Shown piece by piece: positions 16,767 through 41,409 of a DNA stretch of 64,000 bases. The stretch's first letter is position 1; every line of letters starts with the position of its first letter. Location: positions 186,001 to 250,000 of the forward strand of contig NIVC01000426.1 of NCBI GenBank assembly GCA_002269645.1, in the 5' to 3' direction. Both the position numbers and the translations under genes were made by a program. The notes beneath the pieces were generated by a model. That model was not told the DNA's origin. It ran no database searches and saw only the letters and a list, made by a program, of their open reading frames with translations. The DNA is from Macrostomum lignano (lineage: Eukaryota).

Positions 16767-19700
16767 CTAGTCCTCGTACTCAGTCGTGCTAGTATAGGTC
16801 TCCATGCGAGTGATGTACACGCTACCGTCAGCCTCCTTCTTGCACTGGCACTTCTTCACCGATCCGTGCACCTTACAGCTGAAATCGGTGCCGGAGCTGG
16901 ACGCCCTCACGCATTTGCCATTGGTACTCAGGCAGTCGGAGCGGTAGGGTCGGCTGGAGCTTGGGTCCTTGCTGCACTTAAAGTGGAAGCACATGCTGTC
17001 GGCCTTGCTCACCCAGGACTGTCCGGGCTTGTACTTGTGGCTAGTGTAGGGATCAATGCAGTAGTGCTCAATGTGTGACGTTGTCTCCCAGTGGCCATGG
17101 TCAGAGTCACCACTGGTCTCTGAGCTGGTGCTTGTGCTGGTGCTGGTGTGTGTGCTGGTGCTAGAATCCGTGGTTGTCTCATCGGTGCCAGAGCTCGAGC
17201 TGCCACCATGAGGGCGAACAAGTCCCGTGCCGACGCACGAGTAGGTGCGAACGAATCGGCAGCCGCAGCCTACAATTGGTTAGCCAAGACTATTCACTAT
17301 TCATAGTGCTAGAATGGAAACTTATCTATTACAAGTAAAATGTATAACTATACTACATGTAGTTCTACAGGAAGACATAAAGATTCCAATTAGCATGACT
17401 TACGGCCAGACATTACTCGAGACAGCTCTCTGGCGTTGCGAGGCAGAACTCCGAAGCTGAAGCGTCCAGCAACCGCGCCCTTGATGAACGACATCACCTG
17501 GATTTGTAAAGAAGCAATAGTCAACGCATGGCCACTAACAAATAACGAAAATCAATCGGCAATATCGATAATTATACAGTACGTACTTTTGACGCCAATT
17601 TCATTCCGAGTTTGGAGAAGCGACCTCGAGTCTTCCGGGCGATGGCTTTGTACGCGCCGCCACTATGTCCGCACAGATTTCCGGAGGCGATGATGAAGAA
17701 GCGGATGTTCTTGGAAGCCAGCAATTTGGCCACAGATTTGTGCATGCGCGAGTCCTTGGCGGAGGCGTCGGTGAACAGGAACAGGACCGAGTTTCGGTCG
17801 GCGGCAGCAGCGGCATCGCGAACTCCATGCATAGACATCTCAGGACAGTCGCCACCACCGTGAGGACGGACGCGTCTCAGGAACGCGAGTGCCTGGTGGG
17901 CGTTCCTTGTCTTGAGCACGTTCCGCCTGTAGGGATCTCCGTACGTACCAAGAACGTAGTTATTGAAGCGCTTGTTCGCCCTGATGATGCTTTGAATGTG
18001 GTTCCTGACGGCTTTGATGACGCGGCCCATGCTGCCGGTGTCATCGACAACGAAGATCAGCGATCCTCGCTTTCCAGGTCGGGGAGCAACAGGCTTGCAT
18101 GAGCAGACCTTCTTCTTGGTGGAGATCCTGCGGCCACCTCGAGGGCAGCGCTTAGGTTTGGGACGGACTGGTGGTCGGACAGGCGGTCGGACAGGTGGGC
18201 GGACGGGAGGCCGAACCCCTCCGGTTCCAACGCACTTGTGAGTACGGACAAAGCGGCATCCGCATCCTGAAGAGAAAAAAGTCTAAGATGGAACTAGCTC
18301 GTAGATGGCTTAAGCTTTCCTTAAATCTCGGGTCAAGAAAACTCGTTGTAGGGATGGGTAGACGCTAGGCTGACAAGTGTACCCCGAAGAGTTAGTAAAT
18401 AATAGAAATAGCTACACTATGCTACATGTATATACATTTATCTTTTGAGCTTTAATGGGAACATTGAGGGGTTAAGCTACGATACTGCTTTACCTGTTGG
18501 GTTGAGGCCGAATTATCTTAAAAATTGCCAACAGATACACGACTAGCTAACACAATTCGGGCAGCCAAGCAAAATATCCTGGAAATCTTGAAAAGAGAGT
18601 TGATCGATGATCACTTACGTCCAGACATCACGCGAGACAGCTCTCTGGCGTTGCGAGGCAGAACTCCGAAGCTGAAGCGTCCAGCAACCGCGCCCTTGAT
18701 GAACGACATCACCTGGATTGTAAAGAAGCAATAGTCAACGCATGGCCACTAACAAATAACGAAAATCAATCGGCAATATCGATAATTATACAGTACGTAC
18801 TTTTGACGCCAATTTCATTCCGAGTTTGGAGAAGCGACCTCGAGTCTTCCGGGCGATGGCTTTGTACGCGCCGCCACTATGTCCGCACAGATTTCCGGAG
18901 GCGATGATGAAGAAGCGGATGTTCTTGGAAGCCAGCAATTTGGCCACAGATTTGTGCATGCGCGAGTCCTTGGCGGAGGCGTCGGTGAACAGGAACAGGA
19001 CCGAGTTTCGGTCGGCGGCAGCAGCGGCATCGCGAACTCCATGCATAGACATCTCAGGACAGTCGCCACCACCGTGAGGACGGACGCGTCTCAGGAACGC
19101 GAGTGCCTGGTGGGCGTTCCTTGTCTTGAGCACGTTCCGCCTGTAGGGATCTCCGTACGTACCAAGAACGTAGTTATTGAAGCGCTTGTTCGCCCTGATG
19201 ATGCTTTGAATGTGGTTCCTGACGGCTTTGATGACGCGGCCCATGCTGCCGGTGTCATCGACAACGAAGATCAGCGATCCTCGCTTTCCAGGTCGGGGAG
19301 CAACAGGCTTGCATGAGCAGACCTTCTTCTTGGTGGAGATCCTGCGGCCACCTCGAGGGCAGCGCTTAGGTTTGGGACGGACTGGTGGTCGGACAGGCGG
19401 TCGGACAGGTGGGCGGACGGGAGGCCGAACCCCTCCGGTTCCAACGCACTTGTGAGTACGGACAAAGCGGCATCCGCATCCTGAAGAGAAAAAAGTCTAA
19501 GATGGAACTAGCTCGTAGATGGCTTAAGCTTTCCTTAAATCTCGGGTCAAGAAAACTCGTTGTAGGGATGGGTAGACGCTAGGCTGACAAGTGTACCCCG
19601 AAGAGTTAGTAAATAATAGAAATAGCTACACTATGCTACATGTATATACATTTATCTTTTGAGCTTTAATGGGAACATTGAGGGGTTAAGCTACGATACT

Positions 19701-22700
19701 GCTTTACCTGTTGGGTTGAGGCCGAATTATCTTAAAAATTGCCAACAGATACACGACTAGCTAACACAATTCGGGCAGCCAAGCAAAATATCCTGGAAAT
19801 CTTGAAAAGAGAGTTGATCGATGATCACTTACGTCCAGACATCACGCGAGACAGCTCTCTGGCGTTGCGAGGCAGAACTCCGAAGCTGAAGCGTCCAGCA
19901 ACCGCGCCCTTGATGAACGACATCACCTGGATTTGTAAAGAAGCAATAGTCAACGTATGGCCACTAACCCAACAATGAAAATCAATCGGCAATGTCGATA
20001 ATTATACAGTACGTACTTTTGACGCCAATTTCATTCCGAGTTTGGAGAAGCGACCTCGAGTCCTCGTGGCGAGAGATTTGTACACATTGCCCGGTCGGCC
20101 GCACAGATTTCCAGAAGCAACAGTGAAGAAACGGATGTTCTTGGAAGACAGCAGGCTGGCGACAGAGCTCTGCAAGTGGGCGTCCTTGGCGGAGGCGTCG
20201 GTGAACAGGAACAGGACCGAGTTTCGGTCGGCGGCAGCAGCGGCATCGCGAACTCCTTGCAGAGCCATCTCAGGACAGTCGCCACCACCGTGAGGACGGA
20301 CGCGTCTCAGGAACGCGAGTGCCTGGTGGGCGTTCCTTGTCTTGAGCACGTTCCGCCTGTAGGGATCTCCGTACGTACCAAGAACGTAGTTATTGAAGCG
20401 CTTGTTCGCCCTGATGATGCTTTGAATGTGGTTCCTGACGGCTGTGATGACGCGGCCCATGCTGCCGGTGTCATCGACAACGAAGATCAGTGATCCTCGC
20501 TTTCCAGGTCGGGGAGCAACAGGCTTGCATGAGCAGACCTTCTTCTTGATGGAGATCCTGCGGCCACCTCGAGGGCAGCGCTTAGGTTTGGGACGGACTG
20601 GTGGTCGGACAGGCGGTCGGACAGGTGGGCGGACGGGAGGCCGAACCCCTCCGGTTCCAACGCACTTGTGAGTACGGACAAAGCGGCATCCGCATCCTGA
20701 AGAGAAAAAAGTCTAAGATGGAACTAGCTCGTAGATGGCTTAAGCTTTCCTTAAATCTCGGGTCAAGAAAACTCGTTGTAGGGATGGGTAGACGCTAGGC
20801 TGACAAGTGTACCCCGAAGAGTTAGTAAATAATAGAAATAGCTACACTATGCTACATGTATATACATTTATCTTTTGAGCTTTAATGGGAACATTGAGGG
20901 GTTAAGCTACGATACTGCTTTACCTGTTGGGTTGAGGCCGAATTATCTTAAAAATTGCCAACAGATACACGACCAGCTAACACAATTAAAGCAGCCAAGC
21001 AAAATATCCTGGAAATCTTGAAAAGAGAGTTGATCGATGATCACTTACGTCCAGACATCACGCGAGACAGCTCTCTGGCGTTGCGAGGCAGAACTCCGAA
21101 GCTGAAGCGTCCAGCAACCGCGCCCTTGATGAACGACATCACCTGGATTTGTAAAGAAGCAATAGTCAACGTATGGCCACTAACCCAACAATGAAAATCA
21201 ATCGGCAATGTCGATAATTATACAGTACGTACTTTTGACGCCAATTTCATTCCGAGTTTGGAGAAGCGACCTCGAGTCCTCGTGGCGAGAGATTTGTACA
21301 CATTGCCCGGTCGGCCGCACAGATTTCCAGAAGCAACAGTGAAGAAACGGATGTTCTTGGAAGACAGCAGGCTGGCGACAGAGCTCTGCAAGTGGGCGTC
21401 CTTGGCGGAGGCGTCGGTGAACAGGAACAGGACCGAGTTTCGGTCGGCGGCAGCAGCGGCATCGCGAACTCCTTGCAGAGCCATCTCAGGACAGTCGCCA
21501 CCACCGTGAGGACGGACGCGTCTCAGGAACGCGAGTGCCTGGTGGGCGTTCCTTGTCTTGAGCACGTTCCGCCTGTAGGGATCTCCGTACGTACCAAGAA
21601 CGTAGTTATTGAAGCGCTTGTTCGCCCTGATGATGCTTTGAATGTGGTTCCTGACGGCTGTGATGACGCGGCCCATGCTGCCGGTGTCATCGACAACGAA
21701 GATCAGTGATCCTCGCTTTCCAGGTCGGGGAGCAACAGGCTTGCATGAGCAGACCTTCTTCTTGATGGAGATCCTGCGGCCACCTCGAGGGCAGCGCTTA
21801 GGTTTGGGACGGACTGGTGGTCGGACAGGCGGTCGGACAGGTGGGCGGACGGGAGGCCGAACCCCTCCGGTTCCAACGCACTTGTGAGTACGGACAAAGC
21901 GGCATCCGCATCCTGAAGAGAAAAAAGTCTAAGATGGAACTAGCTCGTAGATGGCTTAAGCTTTCCTTAAATCTCGGGTCAAGAAAACTCGTTGTAGGGA
22001 TGGGTAGACGCTAGGCTGACAAGTGTACCCCGAAGAGTTAGTAAATAATAGAAATAGCTACACTATGCTACATGTATATACATTTATCTTTTGAGCTTTA
22101 ATGGGAACATTGAGGGGTTAAGCTACAATACTGCTTTACCTGTTGGGTTGAGGCCGAATTATCTTAAAAATTGCCAACAGATACACGACCAGCTAACACA
22201 ATTAAAGCAGCCAAGCAAAATATCCTGGAAATCTTGAAAAGAGAGTTGATCGATGATCACTTACGTCCAGACATCACGCGAGACAGCTCTCTGGCGTTGC
22301 GAGGCAGAACTCCGAAGCTGAAGCGTCCAGCAACCGCGCCCCTGATGAACGACATCACCTGGATTGTAAAGAAGCAATAGTCAACGTATGGCCACTAACC
22401 CAACAATGAAAATCAATCGGCAATGTCGATAATTATACAGTACGTACTTTTGACGCCAATTTCATTCCGAGTTTGGAGAAGCGACCTCGAGTCCTCGTGG
22501 CGAGAGATTTGTACACATTGCCCGGACGGCCGCACAGATTTCCAGAAGCAACAGTGAAGAAACGGATGTTCTTGGAAGACAGCAGGCTGGCGACAGAGCT
22601 CTGCAAGTGGGCGTCCTTGGCGGAGGCGTCGGTGAACAGGAACAGGACCGAGTTTCGGTCGGCGGCAGCAGCGGCATCGCGAACTCCTTGCAGAGCCATC

Positions 22701-25700
22701 TCAGGACAGTCGCCACCACCGTGAGGACGGACGCGTCTCAGGAACGCGAGTGCCTGGTGGGCGTTCCTTGTCTTGAGCACGTTCCGCCTGTAGGGATCTC
22801 CGTACGTACCAAGAACGTAGTTATTGAAGCGCTTGTTCGCCCTGATGATGCTTTGAATGTGGTTCCTGACGGCTGTGATGACGCGGCCCATGCTGCCGGT
22901 GTCATCGACAACGAAGATCAGTGATCCTTGCTTTCCAGGTCGGGGAGCAACAGGCTTGCATGAGCAGACCTTCTTCTTGATGGAGATCCTGCGGCCACCT
23001 CGAGGGCAGCGCTTAGGTTTGGGACGGACTGGTGGTCGGACAGGCGGTCGGACAGGTGGGCGGACAGGCGGTCGGACAGGTGGGCGGACAGGCGGTCCAC
23101 CGGATGGAATGCAATTGCGAATTTTGACGAATCGGCAACCGCATCCTACAACGCCAGTTTTAAATGTTTATGGTTATGTTGGATAGACAATATTTGACTG
23201 CTCTAACTTGACAACGGAGCATTTGACTGCCAGACATTGACAGGCATGGCACAAACTATAAACTGCCAATCCATAACCAAATCACTAACTGAAAGCTGAT
23301 TTTTTCTACAGTCAGACGGCCAGGAGTGAAATTTCTTGGTAGTCAAATGTCGCGCTCTTGGTTATGTTTTTTCTGATATGTGGATATTTTAAATACATGT
23401 ATTTAAAAAAGGAGCACGAGAATTTCCCACAGGAAGTTTTCCCGCCGAGGTTTTCCTCCGAGAGTTTTCCCGCCGAGATTTCCCCCGAGAGTTTTTCCGC
23501 CGAGATTTCCCCCGAGAGTTTTCCCGCCGATGTTTTCCGCAGGGTTTTTCCTGTCGGAATTTCAAGTCAAATCCAGTCAATAGACAATGCTGGACTAGAT
23601 TAAAACCAGCCTAGACTAGACTAGACTAGACTAGACTAGACTGGACTAGACTAGACTGGACTAGACTAGACTGGACTAGACTAGACTGGACTAGACTGGA
23701 CTAGACTGGACTAGACTGGACTAGACTAGACTGGACTAGACTGGACTAGACTAGACTGGACTGGACTAGACTGGACTAGACTAGACTGGACTAGACTAGA
23801 CTGGACTAGACTGGACTAGACTAGACTGGACTAGACTAGACTGGACTAGACTAGACTGGACTAGACTGGACTAGACTGGACTAGACTAGACTGGACTAGA
23901 CTGGACTAGACTAGACTGGACTAGACTAGACTGGACTGGACTAGACTAGACTGGACTAGACTGAACTAGACTAGACTGGACTAGACTGGACTAGACTAGA
24001 CTGGACTAGACTAGACTGGACTAGACTAGACTGGACTAGACTGGACTAGACTAGACTGGACTAGACTGGACTAGACTAGACTAGACTAGACTGGACTAGA
24101 CTGGACTAGACTAGACTGGACTAGACTGGACTAGACTAGACTGGACTAGACTGGACTAGACTAGACTAGACTAGACTGGACTAGACTAGACTAGACTGGA
24201 CTAGACTAGACTGGACTAGACATAAACTAGACCAGATTAAAAACTAGACTATATTAGAACTAGTAGACTAGACTAAATTTCAAATCCGATTAGATTTGAC
24301 TTGAAATTCCGACAGGAAAAACCCTGCGGGAAAACCTCGGCAGGAAAAAATCTCGCGGGAAAACCTCCTGCGGGAAATTCTCATAGTAGACCCTCTAAAA
24401 ATATGCTCCTTAACAGGAGGGAATTGGAATGTTTATAAAACAATTTTCGGTTAGGCTAGTGTGGCCAAGTGCAGCAGCGTTGGGCATCATTTACTTAACA
24501 ATAAATTTTTGCTGAAAAGGTGGTTTTTGAGCTAACTTTTTGCTATCGTTAATAATAGCAAATAGTGCAGCTATAATTGGACTATTTCATACGCACACAT
24601 GATTTTGTGGTTTTCAAATCATGTTTGTAAGGAAATGAGTTTTGAAAAATCATTCCAAAGGACTGAATAAATTTTGATTCAACCACTGAGCTGTATTGAA
24701 TTGCATGTTAATATTAACAAATAAAGTAGCCGGACAACTTCTTTCTGGCGATTAAAAGGTGATAATTACAATATGAGTAATATTAGTATCAGATATTTAA
24801 ATTTCTTGAACTAACTTTACGAGAGTAACTTTTCTAAGAAACTTACCTTTTTCAAACGTATAAAAACCAGTCGTTACAACTTTTTTGCCAGTTAAAGTAA
24901 ACTTATTGCTATTAAATACTTACTAACTGTAAACTGACTTTGCACAGCATTGAAAGGCAGAAAGAAATCGACTAAATTTTAACTGTTCATACACTTTTAA
25001 AAGCATTTGCTCAGGTTATAAGCACTGTGACATAAAGGTTTCAGTACCCAGGAAAACGTATATCTACTCACGGCCAGACATCACTCGAGACAGCTCTCTG
25101 GCGTTGCGAGGCAGAACTCCGAAGCTGAAGCGTCCAGCAACCGCGCCCCTGATGAACGACATCACCTGGATTGTAAAGAAGCAATAGTCAACGTATGGCC
25201 ACTAACCCAACAATGAAAATCAATCGGCAATGTCGATAATTATACAGTACGTACTTTTGACGCCAATTTCATTCCGAGTTTGGAGAAGCGACCTCGAGTC
25301 CTCGTGGCGAGAGATTTGTACACATTGCCCGGACGGCCGCACAGATTTCCAGAAGCAACAGTGAAGAAGCGGATGTTCTTGGAAGACAGCAGGCTGGCGA
25401 CAGAGCTCTGCAAGTGGGCGTCCTTGGCGGAGGCGTCGGTGAACAGGAACAGGACCGAGTTTCGGTCGGCGGCAGCAGCGGCATCGCGAACTCCTTGCAG
25501 AGCCATCTCAGGACAGTCGCCACCACCGTGAGGACGGACGCGTCTCAGGAACGCGAGTGCCTGGTGGGCGTTCCTTGTCTTGAGCACGTTCCGCCTGTAG
25601 GGATCTCCGTAAGTAGCGATGACGTAGTTATTGAAGCGCTTGTTCGCCCTGATGATGCTTTGAATGTGGTTCCTGACGGCTGTGATGACGCGGCCCATGC

Positions 25701-27756
25701 TGCCGGTGTCATCTACAACGAAGATCAGCGATCCTCGCTTTCCAGGTCGGGGAGCTACCGGCTTGCATGAGCAGACCTTTCGCCTTCGGAAGCTGACCCT
25801 TTCGCCTCTTCGGCATTCTAAAGTAGAATTTAATTTGGCGAAAACATGTAGATTTGCATTATACAAATTTTATCATCTATCGAAGAAGGATCTTACTTCT
25901 TGGCGGTTTTGGTTTCTTTCCGCCACCACCTCTGCACTTGTAGTGACGAACCACGCGGCATCCGCAGCCTAAATGGATTGAAAAATTCAATAAATGAAGA
26001 GTCATGCTCGCTTTTAAGCTATAAAAGGTAGCTTGTGCAATCGTTCGAAATTAAGAGAAAGAAAAAATACTTTAAAATTCTTTTACTCACGACCAGACAT
26101 TACTCGGCGTAGTTCTCCAGCATTGCGTGGAAAGACGCTAAAGCTGTAGTGTCCCGAAACAGCCTTGCGAATGAAGTGCATTACCTGCAAATTTTTATCC
26201 AAAATAATACAATGTAGCCATGACAGTACACATAATAGTCAAAAATAAAATATCTTTCCCAACTAAAGAGTTAATGATGCACTAAATTTACGGGCTACTG
26301 TAAGCTATAGATCAAAACTTACGGATTTGGTATATGCGTTGCCCAACTTAGAAAACCGACCTCGAGTCCTCGTGGCGAGAGATTTGTACACATTGCCCGG
26401 TCGGCCGCACAGATTTCCAGAAGCAACAGTGAAGAAGCGGATGTTCTTGGAAGACAGCAGGCTGGCGACAGAGCTCTGCAAGTGGGCGTCCTTGGCGGAG
26501 GCGTCGGTGAACAGGAACAGGACCGAGTTGCGGTCGGCGGCAGCAGCGGCATCGCGAACTCCTTGCAGAGCCATCTCAGGACAGTCGCCACCACCGTGAG
26601 GACGGACGCGTCTCAGGAACGCGAGTGCCTGGTGGGCGTTCCTTGTCTTGAGCACGTTCCGCCTGTAGGGATCTCCGTAAGTAGCGATGACGTAGTTATT
26701 GAAGCGCTTGTTCGCCCTGATGATGCTTTGAATGTGGTTCCTGACGGCTGTGATGACGCGGCCCATGCTGCCGGTGTCATCGACAACGAAGATCAGCGAT
26801 CCTCGCTTTCCAGGTCGGGGAGCTACCGGCTTGCAGGAGCAGACCCTCTTGCTGGTGGCAACTGGCCTGCCTCCGCCGGGGCATCCTGTGAATTTCAAGC
26901 GCAATAATTTTTTTCAGTACGAGTATTTGTAGCTGAAACTTAACCAACCAATGAAATCAACCTGCGAGCTGAACGGGATCAAATGTGAGTGTCAACTCGC
27001 AAAGTCCCTCCCTAATCTGCATAACCCCGCTTCTTGGTCCGTAGCACGGCCAATATAGCTAGCCGTCCGCTCCTGTATACGCCTATGCTGTATCTACGGT
27101 GTCTTACAGCAGTTTAGAGTAAGATGCTTGGAAGCCACATTAAGCGTAGGCATGGAAAAAAGACGCGTCAGCCTCGCGGTCAGCGTCCAAGTCTCGGCTC
27201 TCTAAATAATTCTACACGTAGGTTTTCTAAATGACGTACGAGCGTAATAGGAGTATTTATTTGCAGGGGTCAGCTAGAAAACTTCTTTACCTCAAGGGAG
27301 AGAAGAGCTAGGAAAGGGGAGAAAAGAGCAGAGAGCTGAGAAGAGAAACAAACCTTGAGGGGGCAGATTGGTATTGTGGAATTTCAAAGGACCCCGAGGG
27401 CCGGATAGAGAGGCTTCGCGGACCGGAGTTTGCCGACCCCTTCATTTAAGGTGGGTCGCCATCACAAATCCGAAAAACACGACTCCGAAAAGCGCTTTCC
27501 AAAAAAGTGGTTCATGATGGGCGTTGCTATTTTATTTTTCAGAGTTATGATATTTCGCGTTTGCGATATTTCGGGTTTGTGACGCCCCCATTTAAGGTGA
27601 CATGACATTTCTAGCGGCCTTTGCACATGCACAATGGGAACAGCAAACCCCGCGGCGGAGCAAACGTCACCCGGAAAACTTACGCGGCATGCTTCGCCCT
27701 TCGCTCACCGCCAGGATGACCAGGGCAAGCGCCAGAAACTTCAGTAGATGACGCAT
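16767..27756 (-). CDS. Secreted, highly basic protein with seven tandem hemicentin/VWA7-type vWA domains, ~1,949 aa, 17 exons
   Basis: Exons 27756-27684, 26885-26323, 26184-26091, 25968-25897, 25817-25255, 25165-25072, 23145-22448, 22358-22265, 21912-21233, 21142-21049, 20696-20017, 19926-19833, 19480-18801, 18712-18619, 18266-17587, 17497-17404, 17269-16767. All junctions are GT-AG and phase-consistent; the sum is 5850 nt (1950 codons). Signal peptide MRHLLKFLALALVILAVSEG. Each domain carries IFVVDDTGSM, GGGDCPEM and LFLFTDASAKD. Confidence 0.87.
17400..23150. repeat. Intragenic tandem array of ~1,214-1,216-bp exon+intron units
   Basis: vWA ORFs at 17572, 18786, 20002, 21218 and 22433. Introns are nearly identical between copies. 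Confidence 0.97.
23418..24382. mobile_element. Foldback/MITE-like element enclosing a (CTAGA/CTGGA)n array, in a vWA-gene intron
   Basis: gagaatttccc...cagggtttttcctgtcggaatttcaagtcaaat is inverted at 24290-24382. Pentamer array at ~23610-24225. No clear TSD. Confidence 0.7.
27264..27441. mobile_element. Internally deleted hAT (Charlie-like) MITE, related to 35173-36181
   Basis: Ends CAGGGGTCAGC...GTTTGCCGACCCCT. Shares gagagctgagaagag...gggccggatagagaggc with the 35-36 kb copy. Confidence 0.7.
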
Positions 27757-27862: not shown

Positions 27863-27869
27863 TTTTATA
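27863..27869 (-). promoter_or_regulatory. Candidate TATA box of the multi-vWA gene
   Basis: TATAAAA on the minus strand ~110 nt upstream of the ATG at 27756. Confidence 0.3.
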
Positions 27870-40063: not shown

Positions 40064-41409
40064 CGAGGTGTATTCAAAAAGTTCTTTTCGGTGCCCTACA
40101 AAACTGAACACAAAACAACTGGAACTATGAAAACACTGTTAGATTGCTTAACATGATTCGGTCACTCAACATATTCACCGCCAATGTCTTTGCACTTCTG
40201 CCAGCGATTTACCAGGCCTCTGATTCCGGAACTCACACCACTCGCGTCCGTTTGGCGAACAGCTTGATTGCATGCAGCCTCGATGTGCTCGACGCTGTCG
40301 AATCGAATGCCCCGAAGGTGCTTCTTCACAGATGGAAATAAGAAGAAGTCGCACGGCGACAAATCAGGCGAATAGGCTGGATGTTGGAGCACTTCCCATC
40401 CCCATTTGCTCAGGAGTTCCACGACGTTGTGCTTGCGATGTGCTGGCGCATTGTCGTGCAGCAGGATCACGCCAGATTCCAGCAGATCAGGGCGCTTCTT
40501 TCGTATTGCTGGGCGCAGCTTCTCCTGCAGAATCCACTTGTAGTAGTCCCCATTGACGGTGGTTCCTTGTGGGACTGCCCAGTTCAGCAGGATTCCTTGG
40601 GAATCAAAAAACATGACGTGCATGATCTTCATCGCGCCCTGCTTCCTGATGGCCTTCTGAGGTCTTGGAGAATGTGCTGGAAGCCATTCGGCAGACTGGG
40701 CCTTTGTCTCAGGATCCCAGCTGTAAACCCACGTCTCGTCTCCAGCTACAATTCTTGATAGAAAATCCTCCCCTTCTCGATGGAACCGACGCAGGTGGCT
40801 GCTTGAAGCCACAGTTCGCTGCATCTTTTGCTCACCTGTCAGCAGGTGTGGCACCCACTTGCAAAACTTTTTCTGCAGGTGAAGACGCTCCGTCAGAATG
40901 GTGTGGACGCTTCCTACTGACACACCAACGTCTTCTGCCAACTCTTCGCAAGTCCGTCGCCGATCATCATCCAGGAGCTCTTGCACTTTCTTCACAACAG
41001 TCTCGTTGGTTGCAGTCATCGGCCTTCCAGAGCGATCATTGTCCTCAACGCTCTCTCTTCCCTCAGCGAACAGCCGGTACCATTTTCGAACTGTCTGCTC
41101 AGTTGGTGCACATTTGCCAAGCACTTGCTGAAGCTCCCTAAACATATCCGGTGGCTTTTTTCCTTGCAGAAACTGAAACTTCATCAAGCTTCGAACGTCT
41201 TGCTTTGAAAATGATTCAGCCATGGCCAAGAAATTGAGTGGTAGATGATAGAAATGTTCGCTGCTCTAACATAGTTGCAAACTGAGACTTAAAACCCTAG
41301 GAACGTTTAGGCCATAGACATAACTTGGTGAAATCGCTAAAATTCTGTTTACAAGGCTTTTTAAAAATAAATGCCAAAGGACCGAAAATAACTTTTTGAA
41401 TACACCTCG
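40064..41409 (-). mobile_element. Full-length mariner transposon, 1,346 bp
   Basis: TIRs CGAGGTGTATTCAAAAAGTT...AACTTTTTGAATACACCTCG flanked by a TA duplication (40062-63 and 41410-11). Confidence 0.97.
40162..41229 (-). CDS. Intact mariner DD34D transposase, 355 aa
   Basis: Uninterrupted ORF with an HTH region, WVPHLL, GDETW, LLHDNAPAH and YSPDLSPCDFFLF. Confidence 0.96.
   Translation of the reverse strand: MAMAESFSKQDVRSLMKFQFLQGKKPPDMFRELQQVLGKCAPTEQTVRKWYRLFAEGRESVEDNDRSGRPMTATNETVVKKVQELLDDDRRRTCEELAEDVGVSVGSVHTILTERLHLQKKFCKWVPHLLTGEQKMQRTVASSSHLRRFHREGEDFLSRIVAGDETWVYSWDPETKAQSAEWLPAHSPRPQKAIRKQGAMKIMHVMFFDSQGILLNWAVPQGTTVNGDYYKWILQEKLRPAIRKKRPDLLESGVILLHDNAPAHRKHNVVELLSKWGWEVLQHPAYSPDLSPCDFFLFPSVKKHLRGIRFDSVEHIEAACNQAVRQTDASGVSSGIRGLVNRWQKCKDIGGEYVE

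Follow-up and report, generated by a model that had tools for sequence, protein, structure and literature searches.

The DNA considered here is a 64,000-nucleotide stretch of the Macrostomum lignano genome (GenBank assembly GCA_002269645.1, contig NIVC01000426.1, positions 186,001 to 250,000), to which we refer as the window. Its minus strand carries, between positions 27756 and 16767, a gene for a large and very basic protein with seven von Willebrand factor A (vWA) domains. The gene is transcribed and translated, and the protein is found in tails and in surface deposits of the worm; published proteomics had already detected it, without comment. With somewhat more confidence than doubt, we read it as an extracellular multivalent cross-linker in a deposited gland or mucus secretion.

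Exon structure of a repetitive vWA gene

The gene model was rebuilt on the minus strand with GT-AG introns and frame continuity as its only rules. It comprises 17 exons and 16 introns, all of the GT-AG type, and runs from the ATG at position 27756 to the TAG at position 16767. The 5,850-nt coding sequence specifies exactly 1,949 amino acids without an internal stop, in agreement with an earlier note on this DNA, which had proposed a single long poly-vWA open reading frame (ORF) of about 1,949 amino acids in 17 exons. A TATA-like motif at 27864-27869, on the same strand and 113 nt upstream of the start codon, was assigned by consensus match alone (pattern TATA[AT]A).

Exon 1 (27684-27756) contains the start codon and the predicted signal peptide MRHLLKFLALALVILAVSEGRSMP and ends in phase 1 at a GT donor; this exon and its junction are predictions of the model. 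The signal peptide, likewise claimed in the earlier note, was called by inspection of the sequence: the hydrophobic N-terminus MRHLLKFLALALVILAVSEG has the core FLALALVIL, whose mean Kyte-Doolittle value of 3.37 is the highest of all 9-mers. A scan of the rest of the 1,949-aa product for hydrophobic segments revealed none beyond the N-terminus and no transmembrane segment.

The remaining exons follow the modular structure of the protein. Exons 2 and 3 (26323-26885 and 26091-26184) encode module 1, consisting of an N-terminal flank of the form CPx13CSC and the first vWA core (Pfam VWA_4, E 9e-36). Exons 4-6 (25897-25968, 25255-25817 and 25072-25165) provide the C-terminal flank of module 1 (CGCx7C), a short Lys/Pro spacer and module 2. 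According to the model and the repeat count, exons 7 and 8 (22448-23145 and 22265-22358) contribute the C-flank of module 2, a (PPVR)6 spacer and module 3. Exons 9-12 (19833-21912) encode modules 4 and 5, with one (VRPP)4 spacer per module, in two 1,216-bp cassettes that are 99.7% identical and specify identical proteins. Exons 13-16 (17404-19480) encode modules 6 and 7, which represent a different type of unit, recognizable by PEMSMHGVR, DASAKDSR and FIIASGNLCGHSGG. Exon 17 (16767-17269) adds the C-flank of module 7 (again CGCx7C), an acidic Ser/Thr-rich linker, a tail with eight Cys and the stop codon.

Intron 6 (23146-25071, 1,926 nt) measures about 1.9 kb, compared with 89-798 nt for the other fifteen introns. 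It contains a 665-bp (CTAGA)n microsatellite at 23611-24275, located between inverted arrays of 14/27-bp repeats, the arms of which (23414-23578 and 24288-24382) are complementary up to 93%. This insert looks like a foldback or MITE-like (miniature inverted-repeat transposable element) insertion.

The tandem cassettes are near-identical and have a period of 1,214-1,216 bp. Each repeat cassette consists of a 680-nt and a 94-nt exon, together 258 codons, and both enters and leaves in phase 1, so that the array can gain or lose a unit without a frameshift. At the genomic level, introns included, the units share 94-99.7% identity, and the count of seven units therefore depends on this assembly. 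Between units, the ratio of nonsynonymous to synonymous differences per site (pN/pS) ranges from 0.09 to 0.7 and pS reaches at most 0.29, for unit 1 against the rest. Judged from these comparisons, the array is a mixture of older and very young members that evolved under coding constraint.

UniProt carries the gene only in the form of two M. lignano fragments, A0A1I8GPA0 (314 aa) and A0A1I8F2K1 (252 aa), and none of the GenBank M. lignano proteins present in the searched database closely matches the model. Over 250 residues, beginning in exon 2, A0A1I8GPA0 is identical to model residues 65-314. It thereby reproduces, and independently supports, three splice junctions (exons 2/3/4/5). The 252-aa model A0A1I8F2K1 (P0090) reads the unit-2 linker exon in a wrong frame (…RRVMMPKRRKGQLPKAKGLLMQACC…) before it returns to the vWA frame, suggesting either an erroneous gene prediction or an indel in the older assembly.

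Charge, cysteine flanks and predicted fold

The full-length protein contains seven stretches that match Pfam VWA_4 (PF25106), with 829 bits against a cut-off of 27; single units reach 123 bits (E ~1e-35). The seven hemicentin-type vWA domains described in the earlier note are thus recovered, and its other observations held up as well. A 258-aa unit holds 52 Lys and Arg versus 10 Asp and Glu (about 50 versus about 10 had been estimated), five spacers carry VRPP/PPVR repeats (one of six and four of four repeats, matching the five (RPPV)n linkers reported), and the last 150 residues, Ser/Thr-rich with a net charge of –3 and eight Cys, correspond to the proposed acidic Ser/Thr linker and Cys-rich C-terminus. 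Overall, 131 Lys and 247 Arg stand against 67 Asp and 24 Glu, which amounts to a net charge of +287 and an isoelectric point (pI) of 11.48. The (VRPP)n spacers are probably stiff polyproline-II segments, and the acidic Ser/Thr linker is probably O-glycosylated. N-x-S/T sequons are absent from the 1,949-aa product despite 4% Asn and 13% Ser plus Thr, and canonical furin sites (R-x-K/R-R) are absent despite 60 dibasic pairs.

All seven modules carry a 3-Cys flank on both the N- and the C-terminal side of the vWA domain. The mature N-terminus opens with CPx13CSC, not with CGC, and an extra CGCx7C is found after vWA 7, before the Ser/Thr linker. The motifs of the Cys-rich linkers noticed earlier are therefore real, but the unit boundaries had to be redrawn, since every vWA has such motifs before and after it, with (VRPP)n as the spacer. 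This is also reflected in the AlphaFold predictions. A unit cut at the former boundaries (CGC…RVMSGR) gave a mean per-residue confidence (pLDDT) of 76 and a predicted template modelling score (pTM) of 0.68, with a confident core and both ends below 55, whereas a unit with flank-vWA-flank boundaries gave a pLDDT of 90.6 and a pTM of 0.87; here no part of the unit fell below 50, and additional strands appeared in the N-flank (residues 8-16) and in the C-flank (residues 225-233). From these models we infer a module of 236 aa and a true spacer of the form (VRPP)n-VRPKPKR.

In the predicted structure the unit adopts the alpha/beta vWA (Rossmann-like) fold. Foldseek assigns a probability of 1.00 to integrin I and beta-I domains, ITIH1 and CMG2; the best matches of the re-bounded module are integrin beta-I, integrin alpha-I and Plasmodium TRAP (12-17% identity), and the mussel protein PTMP1 is also a structural match to the unit model (rank 49). 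A PDB sequence search with one unit returned no meaningful match. In integrin beta-I and TRAP, the N- and C-terminal segments emerge from the vWA domain as a pair of adjacent strands, and in the M. lignano module the two 3-Cys flanks probably pair in a comparable way, as a disulfide-clasped beta-ribbon. Apart from the low identity, integrin beta-I and TRAP differ from the M. lignano protein in their biological context and in having no tandem array.

DDTGS, GGGDCPE and FTDAS are present in all seven units. In an alignment of 20 VWA_4 sequences of flatworm, fungal and bacterial origin, the invariant positions are D37, T39, G40, S41, M42, D73, G100, D102, C103, P104 and E105, followed by D129, A130, S131, K133, D134, C161 and G177. 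The alignment thus shows strict conservation of the motif positions of a metal-ion-dependent adhesion site (MIDAS; DxTGS, GGGD and TDAS) and of one intradomain Cys pair; each unit has a putative metal site. The MIDAS of integrin beta-I and TRAP binds acidic ligand residues via a divalent cation.

The same alignment separates the cores by charge. Over about 193 residues, the core charge is +21 to +26 in this protein and its M. lignano paralogs P0002, P0003 and P0006, but –15 to 0 in the other VWA_4 cores, including –5 in the M. lignano paralog P0001. This indicates that the positive charge is a clade property of the fold surface and a consequence of neither the linkers only nor the genome-wide composition. 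In basic-core paralogs, the N-flank reads C[PR]xG-x9-13-CxC and the C-flank reads CxC-x7/8-C; both are found in P0002, P0003 and P0006, P0005 combines an N-flank CxC with a longer C-flank variant, and the flanks of the acidic-core P0001 are comparably rich in Cys but spaced differently. Neither Cys flank was found in the hemicentin/VWA7 relatives compared, which came from sea anemone, hagfish, insects and amphioxus. We propose to group VWA_4 proteins with both Cys flanks and a strongly positive core as the M. lignano flanked basic VWA_4 family, to which the protein described here belongs.

The regular modules raise the question of the mature form. A Lys or Arg immediately precedes the first Cys of every module, including the one right after the signal peptide, and the modular repeat cassettes all share one phase; the product could thus be a polyprotein precursor, cleaved at basic residues in front of the modules (…KPKR|CP…, …SMPR|CP…) to free seven vWA modules of about 26 kDa. 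We regard this as highly improbable, given the missing canonical furin sites, the fact that no semi-tryptic or terminal peptides are reported, and the conserved spacer length and terminal tail, which favor function of the intact chain. This judgement concerns the mature form, is compatible with every functional reading and is not counted against any of them.

Transcripts, peptides and the number of units

Peptide evidence was taken from the supplementary tables of Wunderer et al. 2019 (PMC6410801), in which the "hemicentin-like vWA" entries have a pI of 10.5-11.75. Of the 12 distinct peptides, 11 occur letter for letter in the model, each in a tryptic context. VRPHGGGDcPEMALQGVR, DAHLQSSVASLLSSK and FFTVASGNLcGRPGNVYK are specific for units 1-5, and VRPHGGGDcPEMSMHGVR and NSVLFLFTDASAKDSR, both from the tail proteome, are specific for units 6-7. 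EADGSVYITR, encoded by exon 17 and unique to the C-terminal tail, was detected in tails as well as in footprints. The peptide FNNYVLGTYGDPYKR (PMC6410801 Datasets S2 and S3) differs from a peptide of units 3-7 by Lys in place of Arg and is encoded nowhere in the window, indicating that a near-identical allele or paralog elsewhere is expressed; a second locus or allele would plausibly fit the hidden-polyploid genome of M. lignano.

The corresponding entries are RNA1310_3126.1_2 (ORF of 1,242 aa), RNA1310_17919_3 (584 aa) and RNA1310_27252.1_1 (432 aa). RNA1310_17919_3 carries both unit types and the tail peptide, in line with the earlier assumption that transcripts join the repeats in one ORF, although seven units are not established thereby. 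In a newer transcriptome, the gene is represented by a 2,777-nt "5UTR_CDS_3UTR" transcript with an ORF of 925 aa, cross-referenced to RNA815_1151.1 (= RNA1310_3126.1). This published short-read transcript accommodates about three units, and seven units in one mRNA are a prediction of the genomic model.

The assembly could accordingly have inflated a real gene with fewer units, either by mis-assembly of the near-identical 1.2-kb repeats or by merging two alleles. Such an error would be in keeping with the high identity of the units, which extends to their introns, with the mere 925 aa of a complete published transcript ORF, and with UniProt models from the older assembly that fuse the unit-2 linker straight to a unit-3-type vWA. 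However, the 1,242-aa ORF, which lacks the tail, requires at least 4-5 units; neighboring copies are told apart by 4 to 50 mismatches at specific sites and by the length of their spacers; and the window contains no Ns or breaks. Moreover, with 94-99.7% identity between cassettes, transcript assembly from short reads is expected to merge them, so that the published transcripts may under-count the units. We therefore consider assembly inflation quite unlikely, an estimate that refers to copy number alone, is compatible with all functional readings and does not count against them. The data suggest at least 4-5 units in the mRNA and seven in the genome assembly. For annotation, the lesson is that a 5.9-kb coding sequence made of near-identical 1.2-kb cassettes has ended up as fragments of 252, 314 and 925 aa in current resources.

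In the sample Tails_Trypsin the protein has a score of 41.8 with 11 peptides, near 14-3-3 and cyclophilin, and it was also found in Tails_Trypsin_Deglycosylated_1. Amputated tails are the site of the prostate and of the cement and shell glands, and the abundance of the protein there could mean that it is a reproductive secretion, either of prostate and seminal fluid or of the glands at the female antrum, with a role in egg attachment or a mating plug-like gel. Many prostate-limited seminal-fluid candidates are WSC-domain proteins, and three paralogs join WSC to the same basic vWA. Mass spectrometry covered tails only, however, so that enrichment in tails is not established, and the accessible part of the prostate-screen supplementary lists shows neither RNA815_1151 nor any vWA or hemicentin annotation. 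Seminal fluid would in addition be unexpected in substrate deposits, whereas egg cement would be possible. A reproductive function thus appears very unlikely. Our search of the literature on Macrostomum hemicentin/VWA, secretory cells, the mucus proteome and the transcript IDs found no description or localisation of the gene.

In footprints, deposits that stay behind on the substrate, the protein was identified with five peptides each in footprints_Trypsin_intact_1 and _2 (scores 21.7 and 19.7). The footprint lists are topped by a vitellogenin/apolipophorin-like protein, and HSP60, HSP90, ATP synthase, EF1a, RPLP0 and PDI appear at scores similar to that of the vWA protein. A pull-down from tails with the lectin PNA (peanut agglutinin) yielded two peptides amid ribosomal proteins.

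These data do not show the protein to be a glue, an interpretation offered in the earlier note. The protein is neither Mlig-ap1 nor Mlig-ap2, as the ap1 core and the ap2 repeats with TSP1 (PMC6410801, PMC8621496) share no domain with it, and its companions in the footprints include the HSP60, EF1a and vitellogenin-like proteins just named. It resembles Mlig-ap1 as a very large, Cys-rich, strongly cationic and presumably secreted protein of the same animal that occurs in footprint proteomes. The two are not homologous: Mlig-ap1 carries its charge in low-complexity Lys/Arg repeats, combines C-lectin, vWD-C8-TIL and EGF domains, and has no vWA. For Mlig-ap1, unlike the protein described here, expression in the adhesive glands and a phenotype upon RNA interference have been demonstrated.

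As a weaker form of the same idea, the protein could be a minor component of the duo-gland adhesive, that is an accessory cohesive protein beside Mlig-ap1 and Mlig-ap2. Its presence in two footprint replicates and in the pull-down with PNA, a lectin marker of the adhesive glands, would agree with this, as would a polycationic character like that of Mlig-ap1 in an animal whose attachment is heparin-sensitive. On the other hand, all ten adhesive-organ transcripts from two in situ screens correspond to ap1 or ap2, and joint knock-down of Mlig-ap1 and Mlig-ap2 removes the adhesive vesicles entirely. The pull-down comprises just two peptides in a ribosomal background, the footprints hold cell debris, and other described flatworm adhesives have vWD and no vWA, as in Theama (PMC9229212). 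Of all alternatives considered here, we give this one the lowest probability.

The footprint proteome (PMC6410801 Dataset S2) includes further large and very basic proteins that are undiscussed in the paper: a 3,863-aa SUEL-lectin/hemicentin-like entry (pI 12.1), the 3,590-aa fibrillin-like RNA815_38 (pI 11.5), which shares peptides with the former, and WSC-domain proteins with a pI of about 10. Peptides of a 2,090-aa WSC protein from the footprints match the paralogs P0003 and P0004.

Relatives, the C-terminal tail and a proposed function

In the homology search, the best full-length relatives are M. lignano proteins with 38-50% identity. Among the matches listed, only M. lignano proteins cover more than about 16% of the query, and the tandem VWA_4 array therefore looks lineage-specific, as had been suggested. 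The accompanying statement that no protein with this layout is described needs qualification. It holds for function, but the gene is represented by UniProt fragments and by published transcripts and peptides, and there are paralogs with four to six VWA_4 domains (A0A1I8J6D2 and A0A1I8H6R5).

The same flanked VWA_4 module occurs in A0A1I8J6D2 (four LCCL+VWA_4 repeats), in A0A1I8H6R5 (six VWA_4), in WSC+VWA_4 proteins (A0A1I8J083 and BOX15_Mlig004080g1) and in SUEL-lectin+VWA_4 proteins. Most M. lignano paralogs are equally basic, with +10 to +30 per 100 aa, and they are uncharacterised; peptides of the WSC+VWA_4 proteins and the SUEL-lectin/hemicentin-like entry were found in the same footprint proteome. 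The paralogs differ from the seven-module protein in that their vWA domains are interleaved with lectin-like or LCCL modules or, in A0A1I8H6R5, not basic, and none has (VRPP)n spacers or the 8-Cys tail. A 237-aa protein from a JGI (Joint Genome Institute) metagenome contig of 1,696 bp (P0091) is 58% identical to the vWA unit and shows an apparent intron read-through at its end; judged by its sequence, it probably represents part of a related gene from a flatworm, sampled in an environmental metagenome.

Hemicentin-1 and VWA7 belong to the same PF25106 family and share the invariant DxTGSM, GGGDCPE and TDASAKD motifs and the intradomain Cys pair. They possess a single such domain, followed by Ig, TSP1 and EGF domains in hemicentin or by VWA7-specific domains, whereas the M. 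lignano protein has seven copies without partners, cores of +21 to +26 that are not acidic, and the extra 3-Cys flanks. We considered whether the protein is an orthologue of hemicentin (fibulin-6), which has a vWA, an Ig array, TSP1, nidogen G2F, EGF and a fibulin-type C-terminus, but its non-vWA Pfam matches are weak and none qualifies. Likewise, PF23560, PF25107 and PF23619, which are listed for VWA7-like matches, are absent from the protein according to Pfam, and so is the LCCL domain of the cochlin/vitrin type.

Tandem vWA domains serve as multivalent matrix connectors in collagen VI, matrilins, AMACO and cochlin/vitrin, and PTMP1 of the mussel byssus is a vWA protein of a marine holdfast. 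The logic of tandem vWA domains in a matrix connector is similar in collagen VI alpha3 and the other proteins of this kind. These proteins use the classical VWA domain (PF00092), are not polycationic, have collagenous, coiled-coil or LCCL partners, and differ from the M. lignano protein in flanks, spacers and tail.

The C-terminal tail returned no match in a Pfam search. An exhaustive phmmer search with the last 110 aa against 1.84 billion representatives gave one true relative, the M. lignano protein A0A1I8H1H2 (P0118; E 6e-9); the other two matches (P0119 and P0120) proved on inspection to be unrelated repetitive proteins. In a pairwise BLASTP comparison, tail and A0A1I8H1H2 are 39% identical (E 3e-14), with Cys spacings of 22-4-13-6-11-8-1 and 24-4-12-6-11-6-1, respectively. 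A profile search with the alignment of these two sequences returned nothing, not even the known relative A0A1I8H1H2, so that this negative does not speak against further carriers. In A0A1I8H1H2, four fucolectin/F5-8-C-type repeats and an acidic Gly/Thr/Glu linker precede the 8-Cys domain (residues ~590-689). We therefore propose an 8-Cys tail module of about 75 aa with the spacing ~22/24-4-12/13-6-11-6/8-1, located after an acidic low-complexity linker and with two known carriers. It is apparently a lineage-specific module that is attached to two different arrays of binding domains. By analogy to the C-terminal Cys-rich domains of mucins and von Willebrand factor, we read it as a putative docking or oligomerisation module.

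The common tail of this protein and a four-repeat fucolectin/F5-8-C lectin is one of the observations that would fit a role in mucosal defence, in which a polycationic poly-vWA protein in epidermal mucus or rhabdite secretion binds, agglutinates or kills microbes via its charge and its Pro/Arg spacers. The RPPx tetrads recall proline-arginine-rich antimicrobial peptides such as Bac5. Paralogs combine the basic vWA with SUEL lectin, WSC or LCCL (the latter as in cochlin), and the protein is found in surface deposits. But it has no lectin domain itself, and MIDAS residues and a modular 200-kDa chain are atypical for antimicrobial effectors. Defence also overlaps with cross-linking rather than excluding it, although we weighed the four functional readings (cross-linker, defence, reproductive secretion and duo-gland accessory) as a mutually exclusive set. 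On its own, we think a defensive role is unlikely.

The reading we favor is that of an extracellular cross-linker which combines polyanion electrostatics, seven MIDAS-type sites and Pro/Arg spacers that would stiffen the chain. We picture the protein as a secreted, non-membrane string of beads made of seven modules of ~236 aa, cationic (VRPP)n spacers, the linker and the 8-Cys tail, and it would act outside the cell by cross-linking the secretion that the worm leaves on surfaces. Through long-range electrostatics it could adhere to polyanions, for example sulfated or carboxylated glycans, the glycocalyx or a conditioned or biofilm-coated substrate, while its specific contacts to acidic groups of ligands would be bridged by metal in the seven Mg/Ca-loaded MIDAS-type sites and the tail would dock the protein to partner proteins or oligomerise it. 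The data show the structure of the gene, the identity of its domains, their charge and conservation, its transcription and translation, and the occurrence of the protein in tails and surface deposits; we infer that it is secreted and clasped by disulfides, that its spacers are stiff polyproline-II segments, and that it binds metal and a polyanion and has a cohesive role. Attachment of M. lignano is blocked by heparin and other polyanions, which indicates that polycation-polyanion chemistry operates at the surface of the worm. We also count in favor of the cross-linker that other very basic members of the family (WSC+VWA_4 and SUEL-lectin/hemicentin-like) occur in the same deposits.

Several points weigh against this reading. 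With vitellogenin-like protein, HSP60, HSP90, EF1a, RPLP0 and PDI among their contents, the footprints are not pure secretion, and presence in them is compatible with secretion but proves neither secretion nor an adhesive role. The match in the PNA pull-down is probably due to non-specific stickiness. Since knock-down of ap1 and ap2 clears the adhesive vesicles, the protein is probably not a main component of the glue. Finally, the pairing of the flanks is deduced from predicted secondary structure and confidence, not from coordinates.

The current account of temporary adhesion in M. lignano involves two proteins and an unidentified anionic releasing factor, and inhibition by heparin and other polyanions is ascribed to the positive charge of Mlig-ap1. 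Our analysis adds that the worm also makes a different polycation, detectable by shotgun proteomics: a folded vWA array with metal-site residues, from a whole family with members in the same deposits. If secreted onto the substrate, these proteins may help to build a cohesive or mucus matrix, act as partners of the anionic factor or serve in surface defence, and basic vWA proteins would have to be weighed when charge-interference experiments are interpreted. In terms of protein science, a vWA fold that keeps an acidic metal site at a charge of about +25, Cys-clasped and joined by Pro/Arg spacers, is a compact and expressible candidate for a polyanion-binding module. The relevance lies chiefly in flatworm bioadhesion and mucus biology and in this unusual supercharged vWA module.

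More speculatively, the charge-inverted flanked VWA_4 module could be the building block of Macrostomum-specific "supercharged" extracellular binders that combine MIDAS and polycation, so that the seven-module protein and its WSC, LCCL and lectin paralogs would form a second polycationic component of the deposits. We hold this wider idea to be possible but rather doubtful. If it were true, the supercharged VWA_4 family could contribute to the heparin-sensitive attachment and release now ascribed to Mlig-ap1 alone, and its dual-mode cohesive or capture chemistry of MIDAS and polycation would be one undescribed for vWA domains.

The gene stands alone in its surroundings: the window was searched for further vWA or tail copies and for a cluster of related secretory genes, and none was found. 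Its neighbors are eIF2D (445-2521), an amino-acid transporter of the Aa_trans type (~30.4-33.6 kb) and a prominin-like gene (~43-51 kb). On the minus strand, at 40162-41229, lies a Mos1-type mariner transposase with an intact 355-aa ORF and HTH_48, Transposase_1 and DDE_3 domains, which possibly is still coding. Minisatellite and microsatellite arrays fill much of the window and give rise to long spurious ORFs on both strands.

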